Assembly: GCF_000150275.1 (NCBI RefSeq)
Contig: NW_002060943.1
Span: forward strand, 12,781,694 to 12,845,693
Origin: Trichoplax adhaerens
Lineage: Eukaryota > Animalia > Placozoa
Direction: 5' to 3'
Length of the DNA stretch: 64,000 nt
The number at the start of each line of letters is the position of its first letter. Positions within the stretch are counted from its first letter, which is position 1. Of the stretch, positions 11,601-38,184 are shown piece after piece. The position numbers were made by a program, and so were the translations under genes. Below the pieces are notes generated by a model. It searched no databases. It was not told the DNA's origin and saw nothing but the letters and a program-made list of their open reading frames with translations.

Positions 11601-14600
11601 AATTCTAAATCTGTACAATACAATTTAGCCATTACAAGTATCCATATCATAAGCGATCAATCTTTGCTAATTAATACAGAAGAAGAGCCACAAAATCTCT
11701 TATCCATTAGCGAATCTAGCCTGGATATAACCGCGTCAAATTCTCTTATAATCACATCTGTTTTACTGGTAGACGATAGCAGCTTTACAGATTCTTTAGG
11801 CAGTCTGTCGTTGGCTACTACAAACACTGGCCTTGGTGATAGTCTGTTAACCAATAGCCTTAATTTAATACAAACTATTTCAGCTGCAGAATTAACTAAT
11901 CTCAATATCTTAAGCGATAAAGACAAATCTTTGGTGATCGTTGACACAGACGATTTCCAATCGAATCATCAATCCACGTTAGCTATAACGGCGTCTGCTA
12001 CATTTATGAACACCAACGGTATCTCTCAATATGGAGAGATTTCATCAATGATATTCCCTATTGCCACTGAGGATAATTCGTTCGCGACTAGTTCTAAATC
12101 TGTACAAAATAAATCAGCTACAACAAGTATCACCATCCTAAGTGATCAATCTGTACTGATTAATACAGAAGAAGTGCCACAAAATCTCTTATCCATTAGC
12201 GAATCTAACTTGAATATAACCGCATCTAATCCTCTTATAATCACATCTGTATTACTGTTAGACGATAGCAGCTTTATAGATTCTTCCGGCAGTTTGTCAT
12301 TTATGACGAACAGCGGCCTTGATGATAGTCTATTAACTAACAACCTTAATTTAATACAAACCGTCTCTGCTGCAGAATCAACCGATCTCAATAGCTTAAG
12401 CAAAGAAGATGAATCTTTGGTGATCGCTAACACAGAAGATTTCCTATCGAATCATCAATCCACGTTAGTTAGTGGGGTATTCCTAAATACTAACGGTATC
12501 TCTCAATATGGAGAGGATTCATCATTGATGTTACCCATTGCCACTGAAGATTATTCGTTCACGACTGGTTCTAAATCTATACAAAACAATTTAGTTACAA
12601 CAAGTATCGCTATCCTAAGTGATCAATCAGTACTGATTGAGACAGAAGAAGTGCCACAAAATCTCCTATCCATTAGCGAATCTAACTTGGATATAACCGC
12701 ATCTAATCCTTTTACAACCACGTCTGTTTTACTAGTGGACGATAGCAGCTTTATAGATTCTTCCGCAATTCAGTCGTTTACTATGAATATCAATCTTGAT
12801 AATAGCCTGTTGACGAACAGCCTTAATTTAATACAAACCGTCTCTGCTGCAAAATCAACCAATCTCAATAGCTTAAGCAAAGAAGATGAATCTTTGGTGA
12901 TCGCTAACACAGAAGATTTCCTATCGAATCATCAATCCACGTTAGTTAGTGGGGTATTCCTGAATACTAACGGTATCTCTCAATATATGGAGGATTCATC
13001 ATTGGTATTTCCTATTACCATAGAGGATAATTCGCTCACGGCTAGCTCTAAATCTGTTCAAAACAATTTAGCTACAACAAGTATCACTATCCTAAGTGAT
13101 CAATCAGTACTGATTAAAACAGAAGAAGTGCCACAAAATCTCCTATCCATTAGCGAATCTAACTTGGATATAACTGCATCTAATCCTTTTACAACCACGT
13201 CTGTTTTACTAGTGGACGATAGCAGCTTTATAGATTCTTCCGCCATTCAGTCCTTTACTATAAATACCAATCTTGATAATAGCCTGTTGACGAACAGCCT
13301 TAATTTAATAGAAATCGTCTCTGCTGCAAAATCAACCAATCTCAATAGCTTAAGCAAAGAAGATGAATCTTTGGTGATCGCTAATACAGAAGATTTCCTA
13401 TCGAATCATCAATCCACGTTAGTTAGTGGGGTATTCCTGAATACTAACGGTATCTCTCAATATATGGAGGACTCATCATTGGTATTTCCTATTACCATAG
13501 AGGATAATTCGCTCACGGCTAGCTCTAAATCTGTTCAAAACAATTTAGCTACAACAAGTATCAATATCATCAACGATCAATCTGTACTGATTAATACAGA
13601 AGAAGAGCCGCAAAATCTCCTATCCATTAGCCAATCTAACTTGGATACAACCATATCTAATCCTCTTATCATTACATCTGCTTTACTAGACGTTAGCATC
13701 TTTACAGATTCTTTTGGCAGTCTATCGCTCACTACAAATATCGGCCTTGATGATGGTCAGTTGATGAACAGCCTTAATTTACTACAAACTATCTCCAAAG
13801 TAACATCAACTGATCTCAATATCTATAGTGATGAAAAAGAATCTTTGCTGACTGCTGACACAGAAGACTTTCCATCGAATCATCCATCTGCATTAGTCAT
13901 AACAACTTTGACTACATTAATTAATACCAACAGTATCTCTCAATATGTAGAGGATTCATCATGGAACTTCCCCATCGAGGATAATTCGTTTACGACTAGT
14001 TCTAAATCTGTACAAAACAATTTAGCTACAACAACCATCAATATCCTTAGTGATCAATCTGTACTGATTAATACAGAAGAAGTGTCACAAAATCTCTTAT
14101 CCATTAGCGAATCTAACCTGGATATAACCGCATCTAATCCCCATATAATCCCATCTGTTTTACCAATAGACGATAGCAGTTTTACAGGTTCTTCAGCCAG
14201 TCTGTCGTTGACTACAAATTTCGGCCTTGATGATAGCCAGTTGACGAATAGCCTTCATTTAATACAAACAATCTCCGCTGCAAGATCTACTGATCTCAAT
14301 AGTTTAAGCGATGAAGATGAGTCCTTAATGATCGCTGATACAGAAGACTTCCTATCGAATCATCCATCCTCATTTATTACTACAACTTTTACTACATTCA
14401 TGACTAGTAATAATATCTCTGAATACGTAGAGGATTCATCATTGGTGTTCCCCATTGCCACCGAAGATGATTCGTTTACGACTAGTTCTAAATTTGTACA
14501 AAGCGATTTAGCTGCAACAAGTATCACTATCCTAAGCGATCAATCTGTGCTGATTAATACAGAAGAAGTGCTACAAAATCTCTTATCCATTAGCAAATCT

Positions 14601-17600
14601 AATCTGGATATAACCGCATCTAATCCCCTTATAATTACATCTGTTTTACCAATAGACGATAGTAGTTTTACAGGTTCTTCAGCCAGTTTATCGTTGACTA
14701 CAAACACCAGCCATAATGATAGCCTATTGACGAACAGCCTTAATTTAGTACAAACCGTCTCCTCTGCAAGATCAACTGATCTTAATATCTTAAGCGATGA
14801 AGATGAATCTTTAATGATCTCTATCACAGAAGATTTCCTATCGAATCACCAATCTGCATTGGTTATAACAGCTTTAACTACATTAATTAACACCAACGGT
14901 ATCTATCAATATGCAGAGGATTCATCGTTGTTGCTCTCCATGGACACTAAGGAATATTTGTTCACGACTAGCTCTAATTCTGTAGAAAAGGATTTAATCA
15001 CAACCAATATCACTATCCTAAGTGATCAAAACGAATCTGTACAGATGATCACTATAGGAGAAGGGCCACAAAATCTCTTTTCCATCGTCCAATCCAATCT
15101 GGTTATAACTGCATCGAATCCTCTAGTAATCACATCTGCTTTTCCAATCCATGATGGCAGCTTAGTACATTCTTTAAACAGTCTATCGTGGACTACCAAC
15201 ACTGATCTTGTACATAATCTGTCAATAAACAGCTCTGACTTAATCCATACCACTTCCATTACAAAATCAAGCAACATTAATATCTTAAGTGATAAAGTTG
15301 ATTCTTTACTAATCACTGACACAGAAGATTTCCTATCAGATCATCAATCCACGTTAGCCATAACTGTGTCTACAGTCATGAATAGTCACGATATCTCTCA
15401 ATATGTACAAGATTCTACATTGGTATTCCCCACTGAGGCTAATTCGTTGACGATTAGCTCAAAATCTGCAGAAATGGATTTAGCTAAAACAAATGTTAAT
15501 ATCCTAAGTGATCAATCTTTGCTGATTACCACAGAACAAGTGCCAGGAAATCCCTCAGCTATAACCCAATCCAACCTGGGCATAACTACATCAAATCCTC
15601 TTACAATTCTAATTCCGTCTATTTTACCAATGGACGATAGCAGTTTTACAGATTCTTCAACCAGTCTATCGTTGACTATAAACATTAGTCTTAAAGACAG
15701 TTTGTCCACAAGTAGCTCCAATTCAATGCAAACCTCCCTCATTCGAATATCCACCAACATCAATATCTTAAGTGATGAAGATGAATCTTGGCTAATCACT
15801 AACACAGAAGATTTCCTATCGAATCACCAATCTACATTCGCCCTAACTGCATCGACAATATTGATCAATACCAATAGTTTCTCTCAAAATGGAGATGATT
15901 CAACATGGAGGTTCCCCATCGCCACGGAAGACAATTTGCTAAGGATTAGCTCAAACTCTGTCGAAAAAGAATTGACGACAGCCATCATCCCCATTTTAAG
16001 TCATCAAGAGGAATCAGTGCTGACAACAAATCTTGGGAATCTCCAACCGCTTTCCAGCATAGTATTGAGCATAGGTCCAGCTACCTTCCAACTCGAGGCA
16101 AGTATTTCAGAAGATTACCATGATTCCTCCAATGTTATTGCTAGCAACGAAATTCCTATTCTACCATCCTCTATCCTTACCGTCAAGGATACTCTACTCT
16201 TTAGCAGTGTTTTTAGCGCAGTAGATCAGTCTTTCATGACAAAAATGACCTTAAACGACCTATCTGACATAGTATCAATATCGGATGTCTCGAATCAATC
16301 ACTAGCCATGTTGGACAGAAGTAGTCGTTCAGAATATCAAGAAGGTTCATTGCTCATTTCGCCAACTACTTCATCTCTAATAATGTCGCCTTCACAAATG
16401 GATGAGAACGATTTCATTTCAGCCTTTAGCATCACTCAATTAATCCATGATGAGGAATATTCTTCGTCAGCAGAAGCATTGCTTCATCAATCGCTCTATC
16501 TATCCAATTCTGCCTTTTCGCAATTCTCCCATCTACCAATCTACAGCAATACCATTCCAAGCCATCAAGGCAATTTACCTTCAACCATTTCCTCCTTGTA
16601 TTCCAATGTTGTTCCCTCTAGCGGGATAGAGCTCGTTAGCAGCCGTGATATCTTCACTGATCAGGATGAAATTTTACTAGTAACTACAAAAGTAAATAAC
16701 TTAATTTCTATGACAGCATCTGGAAATGTCTTGATCATTTCAACGAGTAGGATAAATGCTATAAGTGATGGCGAAGATTCGTTATCGTATGGAAGTACAA
16801 ATACGATTCTATCTGATGTTCCATCGACTACTATTGCAACATGGTTGGACTCTAACACCATTTCAGATTATCAACAAGACTTATCGTTTGCAAGCACCAA
16901 TATCCTTCAGCCGGATATTGCATCCACTACCACTGCTACCCCTATCCTCTTTCAACTAGACACTAACACCTTGTCAGATTATCAAGAAAATTTGCCGTTT
17001 GCGAGCACTCACAATCTCCAGCTGGATATTGCATTGATTACCATTGCTACACCAATCACCTTCCAACTAGATACTAACACCTTTTCGCATTACCAAGAAA
17101 GTTTATCGTTTGCAAGCATAAACAATATTTATCCTGAGATAGTGTCGAAAACCATTGCAACATCTATCGCTTTACAGCTAGATACGAACTCGATTTCAGA
17201 TTATCAACAGAGTTTGCCGTTTGCAAGCACCAATATTCTTCAGCCGGATATTGCATCGGCTACCATTGCAACTGCAAACATCTTGCAGCTGGACACCAAC
17301 ACCATTTTAAATTATCAAGGAAGTTTATCGTTTGCAAGCACTAATAACTTTCAGCCGGATATCTCAAATTACAAGCAGAGTTTACCGCTAGTAAGCACTA
17401 AGATTTATCAGCCGGATATTGCATCGACTACCTTTGCAACACCAATCATCTTGCAGCTAGACTCAAACACCATTTCCAATTACCAAGAAAGTTTATCGTT
17501 TGCAAGCTCTAATAATCTTCAGCAGGATATTTCATATTACAAGCAGAGTTTACCGCTTGCAAGCACTAAGATTTATCAGCCGGATATTGCATCGACTACT

Positions 17601-20600
17601 ATTGCAACGCCAATCATCTCGCAGCTAGACACAAACACCATTTCAGATTACCAAGAAAGTTTATCATTTGCTAACACAAATAATAATCATCTTGAAAATG
17701 CATCGACTACCATTGCCACACCAATCATCTTACAACTAAATGCTAGCACAACTTTAAAGGACCAACAGGGTTTATCATTGGCAAGCACAAATATTCTCCA
17801 ATCCGATTTTAAATCGACTGCCAAGGAGAGTTTACCAACTACTGCAGAAACACATTGGATTCAAACACGATCCATTTCTGATTACAGTAATTTCTACAGT
17901 AAAGATGATCTATCAGCTGTAGTTTCCTTTGGCTTTAGTAGCATATCTATGAAACTGTCATCAACCCTCCTTGAAACTTTTCCAATGACCAGTTCGAAAG
18001 TTTATGAAGGTTTATCCAGTACTATTTTGGCTTCTGAAATAAGATCTTCTATAACGCTGTCTTCAACGGCTACCTTTAGCTTACCTACATTTTACACATT
18101 CAGTTCTAATCAGTACGTCTCTAGCTTTCGACCATCTTCATTAACAGCATCGACTGCAGCCAACATCAACACTTACGAAAGCTTGGCTTTCGCTTCGAAC
18201 ATTGCAAAGTCAGTGGAATCCATTAATACTCCATTTATTCCACAAAGTGAAGAATCCACGCAATTATTATCCAATATCATCACGTTATCCTTTCCTTCGT
18301 TCAGCATAGGCCATGTTACTTCATTCTATCCTCCTACGAGTAATTCGCCAACTCCTACTTCTGCTTTGGTTAACACTACCTTGCAGAGTTTATTAGACAG
18401 CATGCACACCTTGACATCAAGTTCTTCTGATATCAATGTAGCATCATCAGTTATTCCTAAACCTATAGCTAGCAGTTTAGACACTATCTCTCTGATTTTT
18501 AAGATAGACAATACGACTGGTAGCCTAATGGATTCGTATACTCCCTCTTATTCTCCAACATCATCTATCAATATCTTGCCCATATCGGCGAATCGATCAT
18601 CCGCAGCATCGACTACCATTTCAGCTGATGTTGAAATATCGAGCTCCATCATCAGTATAGATAAATCCCCTTCTGGGTTAATAACTACTAAAAATTTAGC
18701 GTCTTTACCTTTATTATCTGGCTCAACAGCAGGAATGATTAGCTCTAAACTATTTACTACCGATATTCTATCCTATACGAACAATTCCACTTCAAGCATC
18801 CAAGTAGAAATATCTGCATCCAAGCCAATTTTAATTGCAACAAATCCTCTTACTAGCGGTATAAATAATTATAATCCAAGTCCAACAACCTTACTTACAA
18901 CAACGTCTTCGGCTGTGTTTTCCGCTACGCCAACAATTAATCCTTGCCAAAGTAATCCTTGTAAACCGTTTGCAGTTTGTTATCCGCAACAATCTTTACC
19001 TAGCCAGTACTTCTGTCGATGTAGAGTAGGCTATTACCAGCTAAATCCGAACATTTTCTTAACAAGCAGCCAAGGATGTTTAGGTATCGTGATTGGAGTA
19101 ATTCTGCATTATAGATAGTTACCTGGGGCTATAAATTGATTGCCTTGCCATACGTCTTGAAGAGCGTAGATTCTCCATTTATCGTTTCATAATGAATAAT
19201 TTTTCGTGCTTGTGTACAAACTGAAAATTTTTACCGTCGTTATTTCAATCGTGTACTACGATGGCATTTTAAATTATTGTAATCGTATGTGAAAAATCTG
19301 AGGCTAAATATATCAATCTACAACTAAACAGTTTAAAATAGCGATTGATATGCTTTGTATTTTATCCACGGAATTGTAGAAGGAATCTATTTTTCTGGTC
19401 TGTTAACTCTCGATGCAGCTTTTTTCCCGTCGTTAAATGATGCCACTAGCCAAAAAGGACAACAAATTAAACATGAAAGCAAATTACTGGTATCGCCCTT
19501 TATTCGCACTAACGATAGTACCTTATCCAATCTATTAAACTACTGACATCTTTAACTGATCATTTTCATGTTGTCCTTAGATGGAAGAAGCAATACGAAA
19601 TAGCGCAGTGACTGCTAGCAACTTTATCTATATTTTCATTGTTGGCCTTAGGTAAGGAAATCATGTTAAGTAATCCTTAATAGATAAAGCAAGCATGAGT
19701 AAAGGAATGGGAATCAGGCAATTATTTCTTACACATTACAGCAATCTACAAAGCTGTTTGCATTTTAAAATGGCTTTTACTTTAACCAATAGCGAATGAT
19801 ATTTGCAGTATATCCAGTACAAGTAATTAATAAATTAATAACTGTGTTTATATTATAGATCTGGAAGCATTCTGGTCGATTTTTATGCTATCTATGATAG
19901 TAACGCGACAGTCAATGAAATCATTCTTGAAACAACTATTAAACAACATGTACGATTCGTGGATAATTTTGTAGTTCAAACTGTTAATATGACAGGTAGG
20001 ACAACTCGCTTTACATGTAATATTAGATATATCCGTTAAGTCTAACTCAGATATTACCATGGAAAATTAGAAACAAATGAATGCTTAGACGATAATGATC
20101 CCTGCTCTGGTGAAGAAAAGCTATGCATCGATTTAGAATATGGGTTTAAATGTGAAAACTGTCCTGTCGGCTTTCTATTTAATTCATCTAGCAAAGGGTG
20201 TTCAGGTAATTATTGCATACTATTCAATTTACAGTTTGCCATTAAATAGCCCTAGTGAGAGTATAGTCTTAGTTTTGACAAATCAACATTTATCAAATGC
20301 GAGAAATTATGTTTTAATAGAGTTAAAGCAGATTCATATCATTTATGCTGGTACTTGATCGATAATATGTACTAATGGATGAAAATACTATCTAGTGCTG
20401 CCTAAAATTTGGCTAATAGCAATAATCATTATTCCCGTACTAGACATCAACGAATGTATTGGCGGCACCAATCCTTGCAATAGCAATAAGAAATGTGTTA
20501 ATACCAATGGAAGTTATGCATGCCGGCCGGAATCAACTACTAAACCACCTCTCGGTATTTGCCTCTTAGAGATTACATCAATAAAACTTAGAAATGTCTA

Positions 20601-23337: not shown

Positions 23338-26221
23338 CTATAGCTCTTGCTTATTTCGACTATCTTCCTGTGGATTATGTGTATTTGCTGATTCAAAATT
23401 GCATTGAAAACTTTTCACCAGCGAAGGTAAAAGCTTATTCCAAAAGTTCCTTGCAGCTGGTATAAAATTCCCTTCTACTTGTAAATCTTTTCTAACTAGG
23501 AGATATCTTTCATCACCTTGAGCATAAGGACGCCAATCATCTATATCCATTGGTTTCCTGGTTGTAATATATAATAAAGCACTTGATTAAAATTTATAAC
23601 ATCTTGCTAGATTGCTTCCATGGTTTTTACTGAATTAGATAATTTTCAGAAATTTGCTAGCATAGGACCAATGAGGCATGGACTATCTACTTGATTCAAA
23701 GATATCCTGCATTGCTCAATTACATCCATATTTTGACAAGATAATGTTTAGAGATTTGCTGGCACAGGATTAATCAGGTATGGTTTATCTACTTGATTAA
23801 AGGATATCCTGCATTGCTCAATTATATCCATATTTTGGCAAAATAATATTTAGAGATTTACTGCCACCGGATTAATCAGGTATGGACTATCTATTTGATT
23901 AAAATATATCCTACATGGCTAAATTACATTTTAATTTTTGCTTTACAAAGATAATTTTACGGGATTTGTTGGCACGGAGCTAATCAGGTATGGACTCTCT
24001 ACTTGATTAAAGTGTATCCTATATTGCTAAATTGCATCTTTTTTTTGCATATTAAGATAATTTTACCGAGGTTTACTAGAACTTGATCATTGAGATATGC
24101 ACTATCCCTACGCGTATTCACGACTCACTTAAGGATTAAAATTAATTTCTGCACTGGATTTACTTGTTATCGTTACGTCAATTTGCGATCAAATGATGCA
24201 GCTAAGCATTTTCATAACATAGCGCTTGTAAGCCATTTTAAGCTGGTGCAACACAGAGAAAGTTTGTATCCAGTTAATTATGCCTATCGTCCAAAATTTG
24301 GACAAGAACTGCAAATTGTTAGAGATGTATACTTTTTGAAAACAGAAGTCATAGTATTGTAAGTCGTACATGCTCAAGATGGACTCATATTTCTTCAATC
24401 TAGTTTCCTAACGTATCATATCAATTTAATTAAATGTATGAAATATCGTAACATGCAAGCATCTCGAAATGATATAGGATAAACAACGCCTAGCTTTTAG
24501 TGTTCTAACGATATACTGTCATAACTGATACCGTTAGTCGATATTGCACACATCTTTTATCGCGATTGGAGATTCTAACTTGACGTTAGCTATTCTTGTC
24601 TTCATTCTTGCCGTTTAGATCAAGCTTTAAAATCAAATTAGCTTGTTCTAGCAATGTATCAAACTGCTAATGTCTTACTACTGGCAGTATTGATTTAGAT
24701 TACTTACTCTCTTCTGGCTAATCCACCCATGATTCCCATCATATGCTTACTCACTTCTACATCATCTTTGGTATACGTATCTTTAATATAAGCTGGATGA
24801 TGCAATGGATAGCCAAATATATAGGGTACTTCCATTTGATGGATAATTCCTGCGGCAGGTGGAAAATAGGCTGAACCCACTGTAAATTGATCAAATAGCA
24901 TCATATATGGCGAATAGTTGTGGGTTGCTAATTGACCAGCAAGATAGGCAGCTGGGACTTGAAAAAGTGCATGAGTTGCAAGTCGATCCAATTGACAACG
25001 ATTTCCAATGGGATTATTAATATCTGTATAATTTGTATATTCATGAACGATGAGAGAATGAAGAGAGTCAGGTATAAAGGGTAATTTTGTAATTTGAACG
25101 AAAGATTCCCTAGAAAAACCGGCATTATAGCCAGGGAGCGAGGATGTCATGACAGCACCATCATTTTGCACCGTACTTATAAGTACCTTTTCCATTGGAT
25201 TGATTAAACCTTTATAGAGAAGGACTTTAGGATCATCAGGTATAAATTGTTTATCCACTGCTGGTCGAAATAGATACGGATCCAGATTTCTTATTTCCAG
25301 TTGTGCTGTTTGTAATTCATCTTCACTAAGCTTTCGTAAGCATTCTACGGATTCCTCAACCGAATTTTTGGTATTATTGCATGATGTCTTTGAAAGAAAT
25401 TTAGTAAATGCCCCATCTAACTGTTCCCATTTGGTATAATATGCATTCATCATCATATTGGTACCACTAAACATAGCCACACTATGGAATAAACCACGAC
25501 TGACAGGAGAAGTTAAATGATAGGATATTGAAATGGATCCCGCAGAATGCCCACTTAGCAAAACATTATTGGGGTTGCCACCAAAGGAGGCAATATTGGC
25601 TAGGACCCATTTCAAGGCTAGAGCTTGATCATAAAATCCTACGTTAGGCTCAATTAAGACTTTATGAGCAGCATTTCGTGCGGCTAGAAATCCAAAAGAA
25701 CCTAACCGATAGTTGATCAAGACCACAATCACATTCTCATAGCTGGATAATGTTTGTCCATGCCACCATGATCCATCTCCATGCAACAAACTACCACCAT
25801 GAACCCATACGATGACCGGTAGTTGATCTGAACTTTTTGTTGTAGGCGTAAAAACATCTAGGTAAAGACAATCTTCACTTATTTTCATTTCAGGACCGTT
25901 TGGATTACTTCGATCGAAAAACGACGTTGGAGATCGATACTGAGAGCAGGTTGATTTATACTGAAAACATGGAAGAGGTTTTTCCCATTTCGATTCATAA
26001 GGGACAGGTCGTTGATAGCGTAGCGAACCGATCGGAGGTTGTGCAAAGGGAATCCCTTTAAAGCTATAGATTGTTTTATCCAAAATTACTTGTTTTTTGC
26101 CTTGGATAGGACCATTACTAATATTGATGGTGATGGAATCATCCTTAGTGGCATCTAAATGAACGGCTAAAGATAGCAAGATCATCTTAATGATGATCAG
26201 ATTACGCAAAAGACAAGCCAT
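23338..26221 (-). CDS. Type-B carboxylesterase A (cholinesterase-like alpha/beta hydrolase), soluble, ~577 aa, C-terminal KQEL
   Basis: Exons 26221-24708 and 23557-23338 with a phase-2 GT-AG intron (RRE|KPMDIDDWRPY). Signal peptide; motifs FKGIPFAQPPIG, SEDCLYLDV, WVHGGS, NYRLGSFGFL, GHSAG, NDG, HQMEVPYIFG, FWN. The ATG is at 26221; the ORF track start at 26230 is a GTG. Confidence 0.93.
23580..24100. repeat. Intronic ~102-107 bp tandem repeat, 4 good copies plus 1 degenerate
   Basis: GGTATGGACTATCTACTTGATTAAAGGATATCCTGCATTGCTCAATTACATCC-like unit at ~23675, 23778, 23879 and 23986, inside the intron of esterase A. Confidence 0.85.
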
Positions 26222-26760
26222 ATCTTGCACTGCTTATTTCTTCGTCAACGGCAGTATTAGCAAATTGGAATGGTCAACAGGTCCTCTAGCAATATCCGAC
26301 TGTCGAAGAGCTAGGCGCAATGCATCTCTAAATGATTTTTTTCCCACTTGTTCAATAATTTATAATTAAAATGAAGCATATTGCTTGACCAAACTGCTAT
26401 CCTAAGGAAATAGTTTATGTACTCAACCATCACGTGTTGATTTAAAATAACAATCATGATAACCTATACTCCCATCACCTTTGCTTTGTTCGTTTATATT
26501 AGTATAATTACTCCTTATTTTGAAAGAGGGGATTGGAAAGAAGAGCAAGGGTACTGTTAGTTATGGACAAATCATGATACACCAACCGTATTGGCATTGA
26601 AAGCGAATTGGAGTGGCATAAACAACGTCAATAATATAAATTTCTGGATAAACGCTTGACGTGGGAATTTATGCTAATGATGTCTCATAAGCTAGGGCAA
26701 AAATGGTCGAGGTTGAAAATGATTTGATGATAATTCATTATTTTACTATTCGCTTAAATC

Positions 26761-27275
26761 ACTATTCTATATTCTGCTTTACTCCTTCTACTTTTAAGTC
26801 TTTAAATGGCAGTCTCAAGTCCTAGAGCGATAAGTAGCAACTATACCTTAAAATGTGATCTATTCTATTTGACTTTAATTGCATTCGTATACCTTCCACC
26901 ACATAAAAGGCCAGCAATCCAAACATACAAACTAGTTTGTAATAACTGCAGGGTGTTAGCAGAAAATCTTGTCTATTCTACATTCTTCTTTTACATGGTT
27001 TTACTGTTTGCTTGAATAACTATTCTATATTGTGCTTTACTTCTAATAAGTCCTTGCATAGCAGTTTCAAGTCCTAGTACTAACAAGTAACATCTCTAAA
27101 TTACAATGGGATCGACGATACCTAAGCTTAGATAGAAAAATAGAAAATTTTTCCTAAGCATTCTAATTTAATTACATCGAAGGCCTCCCACTCCTATAAA
27201 CGGCCAGAAACTCAAATATACATAACAGTATACTCGTATAATTACTATAGGGTATAAGTAAAAAATCCTGTTGCT
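26761..27275. repeat. Diverged ~258-bp tandem duplication upstream of esterase A
   Basis: ACTATTCTATATT(C/G)TGCTTTACT...TCAAGTCCTAG...ATAAA(A/C)GGCCAG at 26761 and ~27019. Confidence 0.7.
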
Positions 27276-29137
27276 TCGCCGATAGTATGCCTGCTTTTTA
27301 CGTTTGCAAATATCGAATCGACAAGCCTGAAATACTCTGGCGTCTATCGCAACATCTTAGCCAAGAATGGCTACAAATGCCAAAAAAAATTAAACGCATT
27401 TCTGTCATAAAGGCCATTCAAAATGAAGTATCTTGTCAACACCATGTATTTGTGGTTACCTTTAGTTCATCTTTTGTAAAATCAGAATGTCGACTTAACT
27501 GATCAAAGACTGCTGCTACGGTACAAGGAATAGTTCAAGGTAGGATCAATCATTGTGTGCCGCAAGATTTTGTCCAAAATTTGCAAGCTATACTCCCTGC
27601 GGGTAAAAATGCTTTAAGAATAGGAAGGCTAATTTGCAATATTTCTTACTAACAGTGAATCGCACCAACTACTGCGTTGGCATGCATCTAATGCCGTCTA
27701 AATCAACATTGATCGCTAAACTAGGCGTTTTCTTTGCACAAAAGGCTTGAATATTTATAGATTTATACGTACAGTAAAATGATTTTAAGCTAAAGTAGAA
27801 AACAAAGATGTAAGGTATCACTGAGACTACATTCATGATACAGCGAATAAATTTTTTTAACTGCGAGAAGGGTTTTAATTTCTAGTTTCCTACTGGAAAC
27901 ATGAAATATATTTTTAGTCTTGCAATGACTCCAATGGCGCCATCATAAACCTTGATCAAGGATTGCAGCAGTATGAATGATGGCCAAACCCAATAATTAT
28001 TTAATACAATTATTGCAATGAATCTCACATCATTCGACATCAGCTTGCAGCTAGAATAAATGGTCGGTAAAAGGAAATATATAACGGTTGATGACCTCCT
28101 TGTTGTAAATGGCCAAGTTCAGAAAAGATCATAGTACAGAAGAACTTTGTTTTAATGTTGTACCACGTATCAATTATGAAAACAGCTTTCCAATCGTAGC
28201 TTACGACGAGTAGCTCCAATGATCAGCGACAGGACATATTGTCTCCCACATTAAAAGACATTCAGAAATATTTCTTACACTATCGCCTAGGACTTGCATC
28301 ACTAGCAATGCTATTATATAAAGTATCCAACTAATATTTTAATTTTAGGAGATCAATTGATCTCTCTTGATACATAGATGACAAATATTTTCCTTGTATT
28401 ACATTGACTTTAAAAGTATTAGCATCAACTAAAATAATGGCGATAGTAGCATTTTTCTCAGATGAATCAGGTGTATCGGATACCCTATTAATTGATATTG
28501 ATATTGCTATACCATCTATACTTTTCACATAAACCGAAATCTATATATTAAGCCGAAGAAAAATCGCATGATCAAGGCCTCCACTCTGTAATTAATTCGT
28601 AATATGCTATCTATAGTAGCTTGTTTAATAAAGTTCAATAGAATTGATATCATGTACATATACATTACAATAGCTGCAATATTTTCAGTAGTAAATTTGT
28701 TCATAAAGAGTAAGACGACTTAATACTACTAAAAGATGAGGCAGATTCCAAGTAATTTATTTAATTATATGCAGTTGGTACTAAATGGAAAGTTCATAAA
28801 TATATCATCCAACAGCTTATAATAGATGAAATGATTAATATGGCCATTAATATGAATATAGAAATATCTTGTAAAATAGTTAACACGAAGAACACTTTTA
28901 ACGTACTCATTTTACATACATGTCGGCATGGCTATAAGATATTATATCTGTGTCATGATTTAAAATAAGTTAACCTAACAAATACTATTATGTTTGTGTC
29001 GTAATTACAAATAAGTCAACTTAGCAAGTACATTATTTCCTTACAAACGAGTATGCGAGTATGTTAATAATTTCAACTTTTAGGTCATTAATTTGCAGTG
29101 GTCTAGAATATTCCTGTATCAGGTATGTAGGCTTATT

Positions 29138-31884
29138 TTAGCTTTGTTTCTCTTTCTTTCTTATTGCATACCAATTAAATACAGAAAAGAAGATAATTAT
29201 AAAGGATAACATTATTGCAGTATAGAGATAGAAAATATTTTCTTGCTTTAGTCGATCATTTTCCATTTCGAATGCTTTGTTGGACGACTTTAAATCACTT
29301 TCACTATACTTCAACAACGAAGGAATGATTTCATTCCAAAACATCGTGGCTGCTGGTATAAAATTTTTCTGGACTTTCAACTCTTTCCCAACTAAGAGGT
29401 ATTTTTTATCACTGTCGGTATAAGGAGTCCAACCATCAATATCGATTGGTTTTCTAATTATTGTAAAATATAATAAACATGTTTAACATACTTCCAATAT
29501 TGCTACATGGCACAACAGTATCATTCTTTATCACTGCCTAGATCTGTTATCGAAGTTGGAGTTTTATAGAGAAGCAATAAAGAATCAAAAATGGTGTTAG
29601 TGGTATCTTATTGTGGTTCCTAAAACATAAATTATGGTCAGTTAATGCTAAAATGGATTAATTTTAGCATTATTTATTGGATAGTGCATGATTGAATTAC
29701 AGCAAGGCCGAATTATGATTGAGTAAATTATCAAGCCAAGTTAAAGTATGGATCAAGTTATACTAAATTTCAGTGAGTTCAATAGCTAGATTACTAATAA
29801 ACTTACGCAACTTTGCGATTGTGATGATTTTGTGAATTTTAATTTCATACTGTTATCCATTTTTATGCTAAAATCGATACTATACGTGTATATGCAATCT
29901 CCTATAGCGCTGTAATTTAGACTACCCATTTGACCTTTAGACAGGGTTGTCTATATTTGCTTAATTAAGGTACTGATACAAAGCAATGTCGCTGGTTTTA
30001 CCATCGCTATTCTATTCGATATGTATCTCCTATATATTCACAAATGCATATATACTGTACATCTTGTATGCTATGCACATTAAAACTAGCCTTATCTTAA
30101 GCCAGCTTTATCCAGTCAAGCTGCCCATTTAAAAGAAGTTAGTAAAGGATAATGTATTGCTACGAAGAATGTTATAACATGTCGTCAAAGTGATGAATTA
30201 TTCATAGCTTAAAACGAATAAATTACGACAATTAAAAATAGCTATTTACCACTTAATCGATGCCGAGACTGTTTAAACTATCAAACTAACTCAAACATAG
30301 ACTCCACGCAAAATATCACCAGATTGTCTATCGCATTTTAATGTTAAAATAATCGACATATTACCCATTCTTAGCTAAACTGCTCATCATCTTCATCATA
30401 TGCTTGCTCACTTCCACATCATCTTCTGTATAATTATCTTTAATATAATCGGGTTGATGCAATGGATAACCAAAGATATATGGCACTTCCATCTGATGAA
30501 TAACTCCAGCATAATGTGGATAATATGCTGAACCAGCAGTAAATTGATCAAACAGAATCATGTACGAGGAATAATTATGCTCTCCTAATTTACTGGCAAG
30601 TTCAGCAGCGGGTGCTTGAAAAAATCCTTGAGTTAACATTCGATCGAGTAGATGGCGATTTTGAATGAAATCATTTACTTCCACATTACGAGTATATTCA
30701 TGGGTGATTAGGGAGCGAATGGTCTCAGGATAGTCACTGTAGATATAGTGAATCATTTTATCCAGTACTTGTCGAGGGATACCATATTCCGAGCCCGGAA
30801 GCTCAGCGCTAAATACTGCACCATCATCTTTTACTGTACTTATAAGTATATTATTCATTGGGTTGATCAAACCTTGATCAAGTAGTAGTCTAGGATTATC
30901 AAGTATAAATTCAGAACCAACAACAGGTCGAAATGGAAATCTTGACGACTTCATGGCTTCTTCTTGCGCTATTAATAATTCATCATGACTAAGTTGCTTT
31001 AAACACTCTACCGATTTTTCAACTGCATCTCTGCTGTTATTGCAAGATGTCTTTGAAAGAAACAAATCAAATTCCCCATCTAACTCTTCCCATCCTTGAT
31101 GATATGCTTCTTTCATCATATTTGTGCCACTAAATAAAGCCACACTATGAAACAAATCTCGACTCTCTGGAGACATCATATGATATGTTATAGAAAGGGA
31201 TCCTGCAGAATGGCCACTTAGCACAATGTTTTTCGCGTTACCACCAAAGTAGGCAATATTATTTTGTATCCATTTCAATGCTTGATTTTGATCCCACAAG
31301 CTCAAATTGGGTTCAATAATTACTTTATTAGCGGAGTTTCGAGTAGCAAGTAGCCCAAAAGATCCTAAACGATAATTTATCGTAACTACAATCACATTCT
31401 CATGACTAGCTAACGTTTGTCCATGCCACCAAGCTCCATTACCATGCAACATGCTTCCACCGTGAATCCACACAATAACTGGTAGATTATCCGATGCTAC
31501 AAGTGTAGGTGTAAAAACATTAACATAAAGACAATCTTCGCTGAAATTATATTCCGGACCATTTGGATTTGTTCGATCATAAAATGAGGTTGGAGATCGA
31601 TGTTGAGAACATGATGATTGGTAGTGGAAACACTGGCGTGTTTTTTTCCATTTCGATTTAATTGGCACAGCTCGTTGATAACGTCGTGAACCGATCGGGG
31701 GTAGGGCATACGGAATCCCTAGAAAGCTATAAATTGTATTATTAAGAATAGCTTCTTTCTTGCCTTGGATAGGACCATTTGCGATATTGATCGTGGCTGA
31801 ATCATCGTTATTGGCAGATATCAATACAGCTATAGAGAGCAAACCGGCATTAATGATAATCAGATACCGTAAAACATAAGCCAT
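29138..31884 (-). CDS. Type-B carboxylesterase B, C-terminal membrane anchor, ~611 aa
   Basis: Exons 31884-30365 and 29453-29138 (phase-2 intron, KNG|KPIDIDGWTPY). Same catalytic motifs (HGGS, GHSAG, DDG, HQMEVPYIFG); TM IFYLYTAIMLSFIIIFFSVFNWYAI; tail RKKEKQS. Confidence 0.93.
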
Positions 31885-32020
31885 ATCTTATACCAAGAAG
31901 ACGAAGCATCAATCTATCCTATCCAAAGCATTCGGGCAATAATCATTCGCAAGCCTGAAATTTGGGTTGTAAAATAAAATACAATATTAGTATACAGATA
32001 TTGTACCCTTGCCAAGACTA

Positions 32021-32200
32021 CTAGTGATACAATATCCGACAATTATCACAACCATTTTGCATAACACAGTACTTAATAGAATGCCATGGATTGAATTTTT
32101 CGCCACAGTAGAATGGCTAGCGATACAATATCAAACAATTTTTCTAACCATTTTGCATGACAGAGAACTTAATAGAATTACTTGGATTTAATTAATTTTT
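32021..32200. repeat. ~96-bp direct duplication just upstream of the esterase B start
   Basis: CTAG(T/C)GATACAATATC...ACCATTTTGCAT...ACTTAATAGAAT at ~32021 and ~32117. Confidence 0.75.
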
Positions 32201-33180
32201 AATTTTTATATTAGAATGGTTTATGTACGATATAAGCACGTGCCCATATCATATAATAGCTTTTCTACTAGTTATGCTTTGTTTTTTGATATTAGCATAA
32301 TTGGACCATACTTTGAGATAAATGATTGAAAAGATTATATTTTAAGTCTAGGGTTAGTAATCTACGTGTAGTAAAACTTTTTTCTGATGAATATTAACGC
32401 TGCCTGCAGTAGCATAAGAACAATGAATGAGCAATGATGTCAATGTTTCGGTATGAATGAGACATGATTATATATTAATGAGATTGTTAAATTGGTATAA
32501 ATATGATTATAGGTTGAGTCCAAAATTGGCTAAGCAATTATTATTTTACTTATAACTACAATTGTACACAATATGAATTTCTCTTCTAATTATAATCATT
32601 TAGAAGTAGCTTCGATACTATCGGATATGAATAATTGTAATCATATTATCAAAGATGACAAAACACTGAATAGAATATATCCTCAAAATTCTCTGTATTT
32701 GCTAATGGGATTTAATTCATACAGTATTGGCGAAAGGCTACGAGTGGGTTTTGATGATAAATATTAACGTAGCTCATGCAAAAACATAGACTTTATACAT
32801 ACGATATTGCAACAATTGAGTGAATCAATGTTACATTATTGCTCTTCCTATTGTAAATAAAACATTTTATGCAGACATTTAGATTAGACAAGATTAGTCA
32901 GAGTCAATGAGACATAAGTACCGTCTACATTGGCTTTGGGGACTAACTTGCTATATAGATTGATTCAAATTTCTTTTAAAAGTAAGTAGCAAATCTTTAG
33001 CTGCTACAAAAAATTTTGCCATTCTTATTGCATAGTAATAAAAAGAAATTGAAGCATATAAAATCCATGTAGCGAAATTATTGGCACAGATGATTGATGT
33101 AATTCATTTTTTATACCTGTAACTTTTATATACTGCTGGCTTCGAAAATTTCTTAGTTTGAAATTATTCATGTATCAAAC

Positions 33181-33312
33181 ATGAATTTAATTTACGATTA
33201 AGTTGGTGTTTGACTGATTTTCTGATATGTTTCTGCGGTCAACAAAATTTCATGCTAGCATTTTATTTGTAAATATATCAAACACCAACTTAATTTACAA
33301 TTTAAGGTTCAT
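33181..33312. repeat. Short inverted-repeat element (MITE-like remnant)
   Basis: Perfect 17-bp inverted repeat ATTAAGTTGGTGTTTGA (33197-33213) / TCAAACACCAACTTAAT (33278-33294), extendable imperfectly to ATGAA...TTCAT ends. Confidence 0.55.
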
Positions 33313-35765
33313 ATGGGCGACTTTCTGATAAAACAAAAAATTTGTAATCGATAAAATGTCCAGTTTAGATGCCAATTACTATAATAGCACAAATTATGCC
33401 GTATCTTTAAAAGGAAATGTAAGTTTTTGCGTTATGCTGCTTGTCTAATTGATTTATGAGTCAATCGCAAATTTACGATTGATTAACTTAAGTTAATCCT
33501 GTGATTCACTTAAGTTTCGATAAATCATTAATATCAAACTTTATTTCTAATACCAATTAAAATTCTCTCCGCTTCCGAGAAATAGCAAAAGTATAATGCT
33601 CCATTCACTATCTTCTATCATCTATGAATCTCATGGAAGCATCATAATGTAATTTATTTAAAATATTACAAGTAAATGCAAAATTTGAGATTTCTTTATC
33701 TCAAATCAATGGCTGTTAGTTCCTGTCCAACAAAAAACTGCCAAACTACGATTGAAAAATAGTTGTACATGCAATTTAATGAACATGCTTTGCCATCCTG
33801 AAAGGAATAACTAACTAGCTGTTGTTACTGTATCAAGATTAAAATTTCTTAAAACGGTGAATTTATTCCTGTATAGTAATTACATTTCATGCACTGAATA
33901 GACACAATTTATAATGCTAGTATAACAATTTATAATTCAATAGTGAATATTTCTATAATATAGGAAAGTACCGGTACGTACTTGTGACAAATTTCCACTT
34001 CTTAACCAGTGATTTGAAAGTTTAATTTTATTCACAAGAGGATAATGATGTAGATTGCCTTTAGTTGGTCTATCAGGAGAACTGGAACCTAAACGGTATC
34101 GGCCAAGAAGGTGCTAATATGGTGAAGGTACTGGTATGAATAATCAGTTAACAACTACGATAGATCATGAATATTTATGCATGCATTATTTACATAATGA
34201 TTACCTTCGCCAGAGATCACTTCAAATAAGCTTTTACTTGTCGAAAAGCGCCACCCGCAGCGGTGGCATGTATCCAATATCATCTAAGTCTAGAGCATTG
34301 CAAGATTTGACATGACTCCTGGAGTTAGTATTGATGATGCTAATGATTTAAGTCGGTGCACACAGTATTTACTAGTTGCAAATTTCTTGGCCTACAGCAT
34401 GAAATTGCAACTATCGAATCTAAAATCTACAGATATTTATAGTTATTAAAACACTAATTTTTATGGCTAGAGAAATTTCCGGCTGCAGGAATAATATAGT
34501 CTAGAGATTTTAGTAAATATATTAATAACCTTGTTTCATACTTGCAGAACTATACATTTAAGAGCATCATGTGTGTTTGTGTAAATGTTCCAATCCTTGC
34601 TCTTTATAGCTTTATAAATATCATACAGTAAGAGTAATAATTCATTCCTGTGCCATAACCATGCAACTTAAAATAGAATGATTAGTACACTATAGTTATC
34701 AAGAATCTGTAAATTGCAGAGTCTAATATCGAAATGATTCTGAATTGAGCGAAATTCACGCAAATAGTCAAAAATGTATAAACCACAGAATTTGGTTCTG
34801 TATTACGTTTATTTATCAAACCCTATCTTTCGTAGCCGCCTTTATTGCATAAAGACGTACGCAGATTGTACGCTAAAAAGTAAACGAAGGATAGTTGCGA
34901 TTCCACTTCGTATCATGAAAACTTTATGTTTTAAGAAAGGAATAAGAAACATACAATGATGTATCCGATTTGATCATTATACGTAATACTGAAGAACAAG
35001 TAGCGATAATTATATATGCAAAAGAACCAAGTAAGCCCCAAAAAATACATTTAAAACGTTTAAATAAGTAAAGAGATGAAATTCTTAAAATTTTGCTCTA
35101 TAGTATCAGAATATGATCGCTAGACGAGAGCTAAGAACGTTTAAATGGTCATCTATGAAAATCACTGTCTAGAATATCAACGCTACTTTGCTAGTGATAT
35201 GTAGGATAACTATTGAAAAGAATATTTAACATTTCGCGAGAGCTAGATAATAATAACAATGTGCTAACGATTATGGCATCAAGTTCCCTATGAATCTAGA
35301 ATAAAAATTTTTGGATAAATGAAGTATTTGATAGTTGAATAAATGCTAAATAGAAGTACTAGTTATAAATTGAAAGTAATAACTTGATCATCCATCAAGC
35401 CTTATTTCCTTCTTTAATAAATAGCCGATTAAATTTTTAGGCTATTGGTGATTAGTATTACCTTGATATAAATAAAAGTTCAAACAGGCATCCAACACCT
35501 TCTTAACAAAGATTGCCAAGATTAAATATCAGCAGAATTTACTTCTAGAAGAGCTGAATGATAGCTCATCTAAATATCTGTATTAGAAGTCCCCTCTTAC
35601 TGCCTATATGGAGCACCAAGATCTAATTTTATGAAAGGCTTGATACAGTGTAAATTAAAATTTTTACTGAAATCTGTAACTACCTTTATAGTCTGCCATC
35701 ATTTAAGATAGCAATTAGGCTACCAAAAGGGTATCATCTTATTATTCTCGAAAGCCTACTAGCAA

Positions 35766-38184
35766 TTAATCTTGTTTGTTTTTGTCTTTGTTTAAATACT
35801 GAACTAACAAAATAATACTAAATGAAAATGCCAGTGATCCAACAGTAATGTAAAAATAGTTTCTATTTTCCTTTCGTAATTTATCATTTCCCAGTTGACA
35901 TTTTATGAAAGACATTTGCGCGTCTGAATCACTTCGGTCTATAAGAGATGGAATCACTTTATTCCAAAATGTAGTTGCTTGAGGGAGGTAATTCTTCTCA
36001 ATTTTCAATGGATTTTTAATATGCAAGTAAGATTTGTTACTGGATGAATAAGGCTGCCAGTCTACATCAACTTCAGGTTTCCTAGATACGTGGACATCAC
36101 GAAATAAATTTAAAGCGAGAATTGAAATCTATATACATTGATCATGACTGGATTATAAGCAAATTGCCAGGATACTGTACGACTCTATAAATTCTTATAT
36201 AGCTTATCCATACAGTGGTTGTTATTAAATTTTACGTTCGAGAATCTATTAAATCATTTCATTTGTAAAACTAAAGCGATTTGTAAGTAATGCTATGTAA
36301 TTACAAAAATCTTATTTCATGCAAAATGAAATTATCAGAACATGCTACTTTTAAACCACATTCTCAATGCCTTAGATATTTCTAATTGAAATCAAGAAAG
36401 TAGCACTTAATAAATGAGAAGTAATACTTATTCGTCTTCAAAATGGGCCAGTCAATTGATTTAAAAGTAGGCACTATTTCTATGCATTAGCATTCATTTC
36501 CATGGAGTATTGTTGTATTCGCTACTTGGTAAATAAGTCTATCATGTTACCGTAAAGGAAAACTCTCTCATTTGTGTTTCTTTTCTTAATTTACATTCAT
36601 ATCAAAACTAAAGTATTCCTTTAATCCTGTTAGACTACCAGACATAACTACTAAACATCATTAAAGCCATAATACTGACCCATTTCGAGCTAGACCACCA
36701 ATTATTTTCATCATGTTGATGCTAACTTGCCGATCGTCTTCAGTATAATTATCTTTAACGTAATCTGGATGATGTAGTGGATAACCGTAAATGTAAGGTA
36801 TCTCCATCTGATGTATAACTCCACTGTAGGATGGATAATAAGCTGATTGTTCTGTCTTTTGATCAAATATAAAGACGAAAGCAGGATAACCTCGTTTAGC
36901 TAATTGAATTGCCAATTCATCAACAGGCGCTTGAAACAGTGCTTCTGTTAGAAATTGATCCACCATTTGTCGATTTTTAATCAAGTCATTAGGAAGAGAG
37001 TAATCAGTGTAATGATGAACTATAAGGGACCGAATCTCGTCTGGATAACTATGATAGAATCCATAAACCATTTGATTTAATAGTACGCCTGGAAAACCTT
37101 GTTCGTAACCTGGTATAGTAGCGCTAAATACAGCACCATCGTTGGCAGTGGTACCAATGATAACGTTGACTGGGTTAAAGGAGCCTTGAGATATTAGAAG
37201 GGCTGGATCATCTGGTAGGAAGTAGGAATCAACAATTGGCCTAAAAGGATAAATAGCAGCCATAGATGCTTGATGCTGAGCAGTTAATAGATCTTCAGTG
37301 CTCAATTTTTGTAAACATTCGAGAGATTGTTGAGGAGTGAAATGGCTGTCATTGCATGAGGTCTTTGATCGAAAGAGGTCAAAAACACGATTAGAATCGG
37401 ACCATTTTGTATAATAGACGTCCTTTAACAAGCATGTACCTCCATATAAAGCGGCACTTCGAAATAAACCCCGACTTTGAGGCGATATCATATGATAAGT
37501 GGCAGAAATAGAACCCGCAGAATGGCCTGCTATAACAACATTCGTTGGATCGCCTCCAAATGCAGCAATGTTATCGCGTACCCAAGTTAAAGCCAAATGC
37601 TGATCTAATAAGCCAATATTAGCATCAATAACTGTATTTCCGTCGGAATCTTGAACTGTTAGGAAGCCAAGTGAACCTAATCGGTAGTTAATACTGACTA
37701 CCACTACATTCTCTTGAGATGCAAGTGTTTGACCATGCCACCAAGCCGCGTTGCCAACTCTCAAACTACCTCCATGGATCCAGAAAATAACCGGCAATTT
37801 ATCGGATGATTTTAATGAAGGTGTCATTATATTAAGGTATAGACAGTCTTCATTTAATTGCCAAGAAGGATCATTAGGATCCGTTCTCTCGAAAAATGCA
37901 GCCTCCAAGCGCTGCTGAGGACAAGACGCTTGAAATTGGATACTTTCTCGCGTTTTCTCCCATTTAGATTGAATTGGAACAGCTCGCTTGAAACGTCTTG
38001 CTCCGATCGGTGGTTCTGCATATGGAACTCCTAAAAACTGATAAATGGTCTTGCCTAAGACGACATCTTCCTTTCCACGGATTAAACCTTTATCGGTTTC
38101 AACAACGTTATTATCAGCTAGAACAGGTGTTAAAAGATAGGCTAGAAAGCAAGCTAGGATATTTGTCGCTAAAGATTTAGCCAT
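35766..38184 (-). CDS. Type-B carboxylesterase C, C-terminal membrane anchor, ~606 aa
   Basis: Exons 38184-36680 and 36081-35766 (phase-2 intron, RNG|KPEVDVDWQPY). Motifs FLGVPYAEPPIG, NEDCLYLN, HGGS, GHSAG, NDG, HQMEIPYIYG; TM YFYITVGSLAFSFSIILLVQYL; tail NKDKNKQD. Confidence 0.93.

Follow-up and report, generated by a model that had tools for sequence, protein, structure and literature searches.

Can an enzyme of the secretory pathway that loses its membrane anchor keep its compartment by exchanging one retrieval signal for another? This question is raised by three tandem genes, referred to here as A, B and C, in a 64,000-nucleotide stretch of the Trichoplax adhaerens genome (RefSeq assembly GCF_000150275.1, contig NW_002060943.1, forward-strand positions 12,781,694 to 12,845,693; hereafter the window). 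The window lies on a 13.26-Mb scaffold, and the genome searched comprises 105.6 Mb in 1414 contigs. All three genes have two exons, lie on the minus strand and encode type-B carboxylesterases. A reading made from the letters alone (the sequence-only reading, covering 23338-36081) had described A as soluble, with the end RNKQEL, and B and C as ending in a transmembrane (TM) segment followed by RKKEKQS and NKDKNKQD, respectively. It proposed that a stop gain had removed the anchor of A and left a KDEL-type signal in its place. We think it reasonably probable, judging from sequence, that A, B and C are enzymes of the endoplasmic reticulum (ER) or early secretory pathway, that a TM segment with a KxKxx tail is the ancestral end, and that A has switched to a KDEL-type end.

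The first exon of each gene is a long minus-strand open reading frame (ORF) of 507-508 residues, and a short terminal exon lies 0.6-1.15 kb downstream of it. The exons were searched separately, with database proteins from Trichoplax sp. H2 serving as full-length models for A and C. Protein P0002 (577 residues, ending RNKQEL) gives exactly the model of A, matching it at both the junction and the start, and P0004 (606 residues, ending NKDKNKQD) gives exactly that of C, matching it at the junction. As read from the sequence, the intron is of the GT..AG type, in phase 2 and in the same codon in all three genes, with the junctions RRE/KPMDID in A, KNG/KPIDID in B and RNG/KPEVDV in C. The same position and phase are found in paralogs on contig C1395. 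The features of the three genes are as follows.

24708..26221, minus strand: gene A exon 1, signal-peptide-like N-terminus and carboxylesterase domain (ORF, Pfam; donor GT at 24707-24706).
23338..23557, minus strand: gene A exon 2, terminal; end of the fold, a charged stalk of 28 residues and the stop, without a TM segment (acceptor AG at 23559-23558).
23341..23352, minus strand: gene A codons for KQEL, which fits the PROSITE pattern [KRHQSA][DENQ]EL and is a candidate signal for retrieval by the KDEL receptor.
30365..31884, minus strand: gene B exon 1, signal-peptide-like N-terminus and carboxylesterase domain (ORF, Pfam).
29138..29453, minus strand: gene B exon 2, terminal; end of the fold, charged stalk, TM segment at ~29162-29236 and the tail RKKEKQS.
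29141..29155, minus strand: gene B KEKQS, a KxKxx dilysine motif at the C-terminus, read from the sequence.
36680..38184, minus strand: gene C exon 1, signal-peptide-like N-terminus and carboxylesterase domain (ORF, Pfam); it lies outside the range of the sequence-only reading.
35766..36081, minus strand: gene C exon 2, terminal; end of the fold, charged stalk, TM segment at ~35793-35858 and the tail NKDKNKQD.
35769..35783, minus strand: gene C KNKQD, a KxKxx dilysine motif at the C-terminus, read from the sequence and identical in the H2 ortholog P0004.

The three C-termini were found to be as first described. Exon 2 of A encodes no hydrophobic segment (the highest Kyte-Doolittle mean over 19 residues is 0.27). 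B has a single hydrophobic segment of ~25 residues (Kyte-Doolittle mean 2.33) and C one of ~22 residues (mean 1.97), each followed by a charged stretch, 7-12 residues long, that closes the protein. Both tails carry Lys at positions -3 and -5, which is the definition of the KxKxx dilysine motif. The N-termini of A, B and C are hydrophobic and resemble signal peptides, and B and C fit a type I topology with a helix of 22-25 residues and a cytosolic tail, as judged by hydropathy only. A, with its hydrophobic N-terminus, its KQEL end and no TM segment, fits PROSITE PS00014. The claim that KQEL of A aligns with the stalks of B and C also stands: without gaps, RNKQE of A falls over RLKQE of B and KLRKE of C, and the three segments are equally distant from the conserved FWN..PSL motif.

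Both motif classes do sit at the extreme C-terminus, and their occurrence there is more than chance would give. As background we used the ends of six-frame ORFs in the window and in 120 kb of other loci of the genome (~184 kb, n=5372). The PS00014 pattern occurs at 2 of the 5372 ends (~4e-4 per end); these two are not listed individually, and the scanned DNA includes both A (KQEL) and a soluble paralog at C1395:444699 (SDEL), each of which fits the pattern. KKxx or KxKxx is found at 0.6% of the same ends.

The wider family provides a second comparison. At least 20 further esterase paralogs are present in the genome. Contig C1395 alone has a tandem array of at least 17, all on one strand (378000-478000). 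The terminal exons of the paralogs were recovered with a profile that was derived from the exons in the window. Among the TM-anchored paralogs, KxKxx is found in all three members of the lineage formed by B, C and the gene at C1395:447972-449979 (448426 in the tree), and in none of the 14 others. Gene 448426 is the paralog most similar to A, B and C, and it has a TM segment followed by SGKPKRH. In the 14 motif-less tails, Lys occurs once at -3 and twice at -5. Hence, the lysine register of B, C and 448426 goes beyond that of a generic lysine-rich tail. The stalks differ as well. In 12 of the 14 motif-less TM paralogs the stalk is mucin-like, with 38-53% Ser/Thr/Pro and few charges, whereas the stalks of all motif-bearing genes are charged and contain few of these residues (13-29%). 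Most members of the C1395 array thus look like surface ecto-esterases, with a mucin-like stalk, a TM segment and a tail without a retrieval motif. The paralog with the SDEL end (C1395:444699-446781) is soluble, has an acidic stalk and ends in RPSDEL.

The direction of change was obtained from maximum-likelihood trees of the exon-1 proteins, one from a careful search and one from a quick search with all paralogs, which gave the same topology. The trees include three homologs (P0003, P0005 and P0006) from European Nucleotide Archive (ENA) and Logan contigs of placozoan-like organisms. A and B are sisters (support 100/99) and are joined by P0003 (98/97); this group is sister to C with P0005 and P0006 (100/99). 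The next outgroup is the KxKxx paralog 448426 (82/92; SH-aLRT 91 in the all-paralog tree), and all placozoan genes form one clade against cnidarian, hemichordate, priapulid and vertebrate relatives. A, B and C are thus tandem paralogs within a placozoan-specific expansion of type-B carboxylesterases. Since A is nested among genes with a TM segment and KxKxx, its soluble state is derived and postdates the duplication that gave A and B. Rather than being sister to A, the SDEL paralog groups with a TM-anchored gene (support 84), and it therefore represents a second, independent loss of the anchor.

How A lost its anchor is a separate matter. Counted without gaps from FWN..PSL, its stop codon lies at the boundary between stalk and TM segment, over the first residue of the TM region of B. 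By this alignment, the truncation removes exactly the anchor and the tail, and KQE is inherited from the stalk. The sequence-only reading is therefore upheld as to the loss of the anchor and its polarity, but not as to a single stop gain. At the truncation point A has CTA-TAG, which differs at nearly every base (~6 of 6) from AAT-ATT in B and AAT-AGA in C, so that the present sequences do not support a one-step nonsense mutation. A relic of the TM segment behind the stop of A was rejected as evidence. By local alignment, the 100 nucleotides after the stop match the TM-coding DNA of B and C no better than random non-coding DNA does. Over 300 nucleotides there is one marginal match to C (p ~0.015, uncorrected), at 130-193 nucleotides downstream, with p 0.41 for B, and a three-frame protein alignment of this DNA with the TM sequence gave nothing significant.

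These observations suggest the following scheme. A, B and C would enter the secretory pathway through their N-terminal signal peptides, with the catalytic triad facing the lumen. As type I membrane proteins, B and C would expose KxKxx tails that the WD40 domains of the COPI subunits alpha- and beta'-COP bind directly for retrieval from Golgi to ER. KxKxx is known to be bound by the beta'-COP WD40 domain, with an absolute requirement for the two-residue spacing from the carboxylate (PMC3521961). Once A and B had arisen by duplication, A would have lost everything from the stalk/TM boundary onwards, TM segment and tail alike, and KQE, already present in the stalk, would have been recruited into a KDEL-type end. 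Without an anchor, A would be retrieved through its KQEL by the KDEL receptor, which itself returns by COPI. In human HeLa cells, all KXEL variants except KPEL place a reporter in the ER (PMC2140024). That localisation was kept throughout presupposes that B and C reside in the ER, as their motifs suggest.

The machinery for such retrieval is encoded in the genome. Three KDEL-receptor loci (PF00810) were found, and T. adhaerens calreticulin ends in KDEL. Two of these loci are tandem, rather divergent, single-exon receptor-like ORFs of 237 and 241 residues (C1410:6045034-6045459 and 6050147-6050575), and a multi-exon receptor gene lies on C1413; the KDEL receptor may have undergone an expansion in Trichoplax. 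When a KDEL-receptor-like ORF was paired with the last 40 residues of A in a complex prediction, the score was 0.41 against 0.02 for the best control. The tool marks this as 'weak support', and at scores of 0.60 or below a prediction is wrong in more cases than it is right, except where the pairing was likely beforehand. The runs agree in at least 68% of contacts, with a partner pLDDT of at least 57. In a benchmark without peptides, 51 of 78 solved complexes earned this mark, as did 2 of 108 mismatches, and memory of solved KDEL-receptor complexes may have contributed to the result.

By profile and catalytic residues, the proteins are type-B carboxylesterases. Exon 1 of each gene matches Pfam PF00135 (COesterase) at 363-393 bits, against a cut-off of 27, with E-values of 3.7e-108 (A), 4.3e-111 (B) and 3.6e-117 (C). 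The Ser-Asp-His triad is intact, with Ser in GHSAG, Asp in (N/D)DG and His in IHQME, and the oxyanion motif HGGS is present. Aligned to butyrylcholinesterase (6emi), these residues correspond to Ser198, Glu325 and His438, Asp standing where butyrylcholinesterase has Glu. Most placozoan paralogs likewise use Asp (xDG) as the catalytic acid and not the Glu typical of cholinesterases, while the homolog P0003 has Glu. The best matches among solved structures are butyrylcholinesterase and acetylcholinesterase (E ~1e-64), although A, B and C belong to the placozoan-specific clade. The choline-binding Trp (W82 of butyrylcholinesterase, W84 of Torpedo californica acetylcholinesterase) aligns to Asn in B, and the name 'acetylcholinesterase' given automatically to the H2 proteins is therefore unjustified. 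From these alignments, the proteins are better called carboxylesterases of unknown substrate than cholinesterases.

Comparison with other organisms was made at several distances. The tails of A and C are identical in H2. The contigs of P0003, P0005 and P0006 break off within exon 2 or ahead of it, and the contig of another cluster member is shorter still. Orthologs of the C type and of the A/B type, at 50-68% identity, were found in ENA ERZ23499115 and ERZ27263980 and in Logan SRR30660616, presumably on contigs from other placozoan species in those samples. A word search with the exon-2 alignment gave no match, although it is limited by length and a blank says little; a scan of JGI metagenomes with the same alignment gave no match either. 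Among the 120 best database relatives, corals, an acorn worm and a sea anemone have soluble esterases that end in KDEL or RQEL, and the only protein with a TM segment and a dilysine end is that of Trichoplax.

Several points weigh against a retained ER location with a switch of signal in A. Conservation of the tails across species is seen in H2 alone, a nearly identical strain. The KxKxx ends of B, C and 448426 come close to a single event, given their shared ancestry. The codons at the truncation point and the DNA behind the stop of A, as described above, preserve no significant trace of a simple path from a TM-anchored form. Moreover, a KxKxx tail does not always denote the ER: yeast Emp47p, which ends in KTKLL, is a Golgi protein at steady state (PMC2200007). 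Finally, the CEST proteins of Caenorhabditis elegans, which have a signal peptide and a C-terminal TM segment, are predicted to be in lysosome-related organelles (PMC12931606).

The last two cases lead to the alternative that we take most seriously, albeit as an unlikely one. Here, B and C would be post-ER membrane esterases, whether at the surface, cycling through the Golgi or in lysosome-related organelles; their lysines would reflect the positive-inside rule, and KQEL would have relocated A to the ER as a neofunctionalisation. CEST shares their architecture, Emp47p shares their motif, the family consists mostly of TM-anchored paralogs that lack a retrieval motif, and a short lysine-rich tail raises the odds of a chance match to KxKxx. 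However, the generic tails of the family place their basic residues next to the membrane rather than at the end, as the counts for -3 and -5 given above illustrate. B, C and 448426 have held both lysines in register with the stop while their TM segments diverged, and their stalks lack the Ser/Thr/Pro richness of the presumed surface paralogs. It is improbable that the motifs are coincidental altogether, A being a secreted, truncated paralog such as a digestive esterase and the tails being unread by the sorting machinery. The ancestral stalk already had KQE, so that only Leu and a stop were needed; but PS00014 has a low background among ORF ends, and the independent soluble paralog also ends in a KDEL-type signal. 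There is only one further soluble copy, and it looks like a pseudogene, its exon 1 being interrupted by an in-frame stop; the soluble cnidarian and hemichordate relatives carry KDEL or RQEL.

Two further accounts question the protein ends themselves. In cholinesterase-family genes of other animals, C-termini are switched by alternative splicing, and the gene models might accordingly be incomplete, with other or alternative terminal exons supplying the main protein ends. We regard this as very improbable. KQEL and KNKQD are also the exact ends of the H2 annotation models, and the intron position and phase are common to A, B, C and the C1395 paralogs. The ~1.7 kb between the stop of A and the converging mucin gene contain no credible TM exon; the three short hydrophobic ORF fragments there all lack a basic tail. 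Least probable of all is that the hydrophobic segments of B and C are cleaved attachment signals for glycosylphosphatidylinositol (GPI), as in the GPI-anchored forms of acetylcholinesterase, in which case their lysines would never be cytosolic. Charged residues after the hydrophobic stretch are unusual in GPI signals, and RKKEKQS and NKDKNKQD are strongly charged. GPI-anchored members do occur in the cholinesterase family (PMC12931606).

Retention of A, B and C in the ER or early secretory pathway, with a switch of signal in A, thus remains the account that we prefer, and it can be set beside known systems. A resembles the mammalian microsomal carboxylesterases CES1 and CES2, with HXEL ends such as HIEL and HVEL: these too are soluble luminal PF00135 enzymes with a signal peptide and a KDEL-type tetrapeptide. 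It differs from them in its ~30% identity, its KQEL end, its catalytic Asp instead of Glu and its solubility, which is derived from TM-anchored ancestors. In mammals, carboxylesterases are retained via HXEL, and the localisation of a paralog differs through its tail, Ces1c without HXEL being secreted (PMC5818367). B and C share with yeast Wbp1 and Emp47p, adenovirus E3-19K, ERGIC-53 and the UDP-glucuronosyltransferases a type I topology, a single C-terminal TM segment and a short cytosolic tail with a free C-terminus and Lys at -3 and -5. This likeness is one of sequence motifs, and unlike those COPI dilysine cargos, B and C have a type-B carboxylesterase as their luminal domain. In having a signal peptide, a COesterase domain, an unstructured stalk and one C-terminal TM segment, they also resemble CEST and the neuroligins. 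However, no dilysine end is described for the CESTs, with their predicted place in lysosome-related organelles (PMC12931606), and neuroligins are surface adhesion proteins without the triad; B and C have very short KxKxx tails.

Soluble carboxylesterases with KDEL-type ends and ER enzymes with dilysine ends are already known, and neither retrieval mechanism is new. What the motifs would add is their pairing, and the switch between them, within one cluster. Our literature search returned no paper that pairs KQEL with the KDEL receptor, no description of Trichoplax carboxylesterases and no link between carboxylesterases and dilysine signals. If our account is true, the trio is a compact natural experiment in which a luminal enzyme kept its compartment while exchanging a TM segment with a dilysine/COPI signal for the KDEL receptor. 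It would also be a recent, paralog-level case of interchangeable retrieval mechanisms in an early-branching animal, with both sorting codes used on one enzyme family in Placozoa. Its value would be evolutionary and annotational.

The paralogs suggest a more general proposal, which we offer tentatively as a possible one: that the terminal exon acts as a compartment code in placozoan esterases. A mucin-like stalk with a tail that lacks a retrieval motif would mark a surface class, and a charged stalk with a retrieval signal an ER class. The anchor would have been lost at least twice independently (KQEL in A, SDEL in C1395:444699), with a KDEL-type end each time, and selection would have kept ER residence as retrieval passed from direct COPI binding to the KDEL receptor; the ancestral compartment of C1395:444699 is less clear. 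If so, stalk composition and the last five residues would be a simple rule for assigning each of the 20-odd carboxylesterases of Trichoplax to an ER or a surface class, which would aid the reading of their roles in lipid or xenobiotic handling.

Some minor observations concern the array and the surroundings of gene A. Two C1395 copies (457820-459785 and 407969-409865) are probable pseudogenes, judging from their exons: in one, exon 1 is broken by an in-frame TAG and the end (CSRID) is soluble and lacks a retrieval motif, and the other is a recent duplicate with a shortened terminal exon (NKNLR). The intron of gene A contains a 102-bp tandem repeat in 3.9 copies with 80% match (window 23637-24038). 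On the plus strand, window positions 6438-19118 hold a single ORF of 4226 residues with strong negative GC skew, which converges on the 3' end of gene A.

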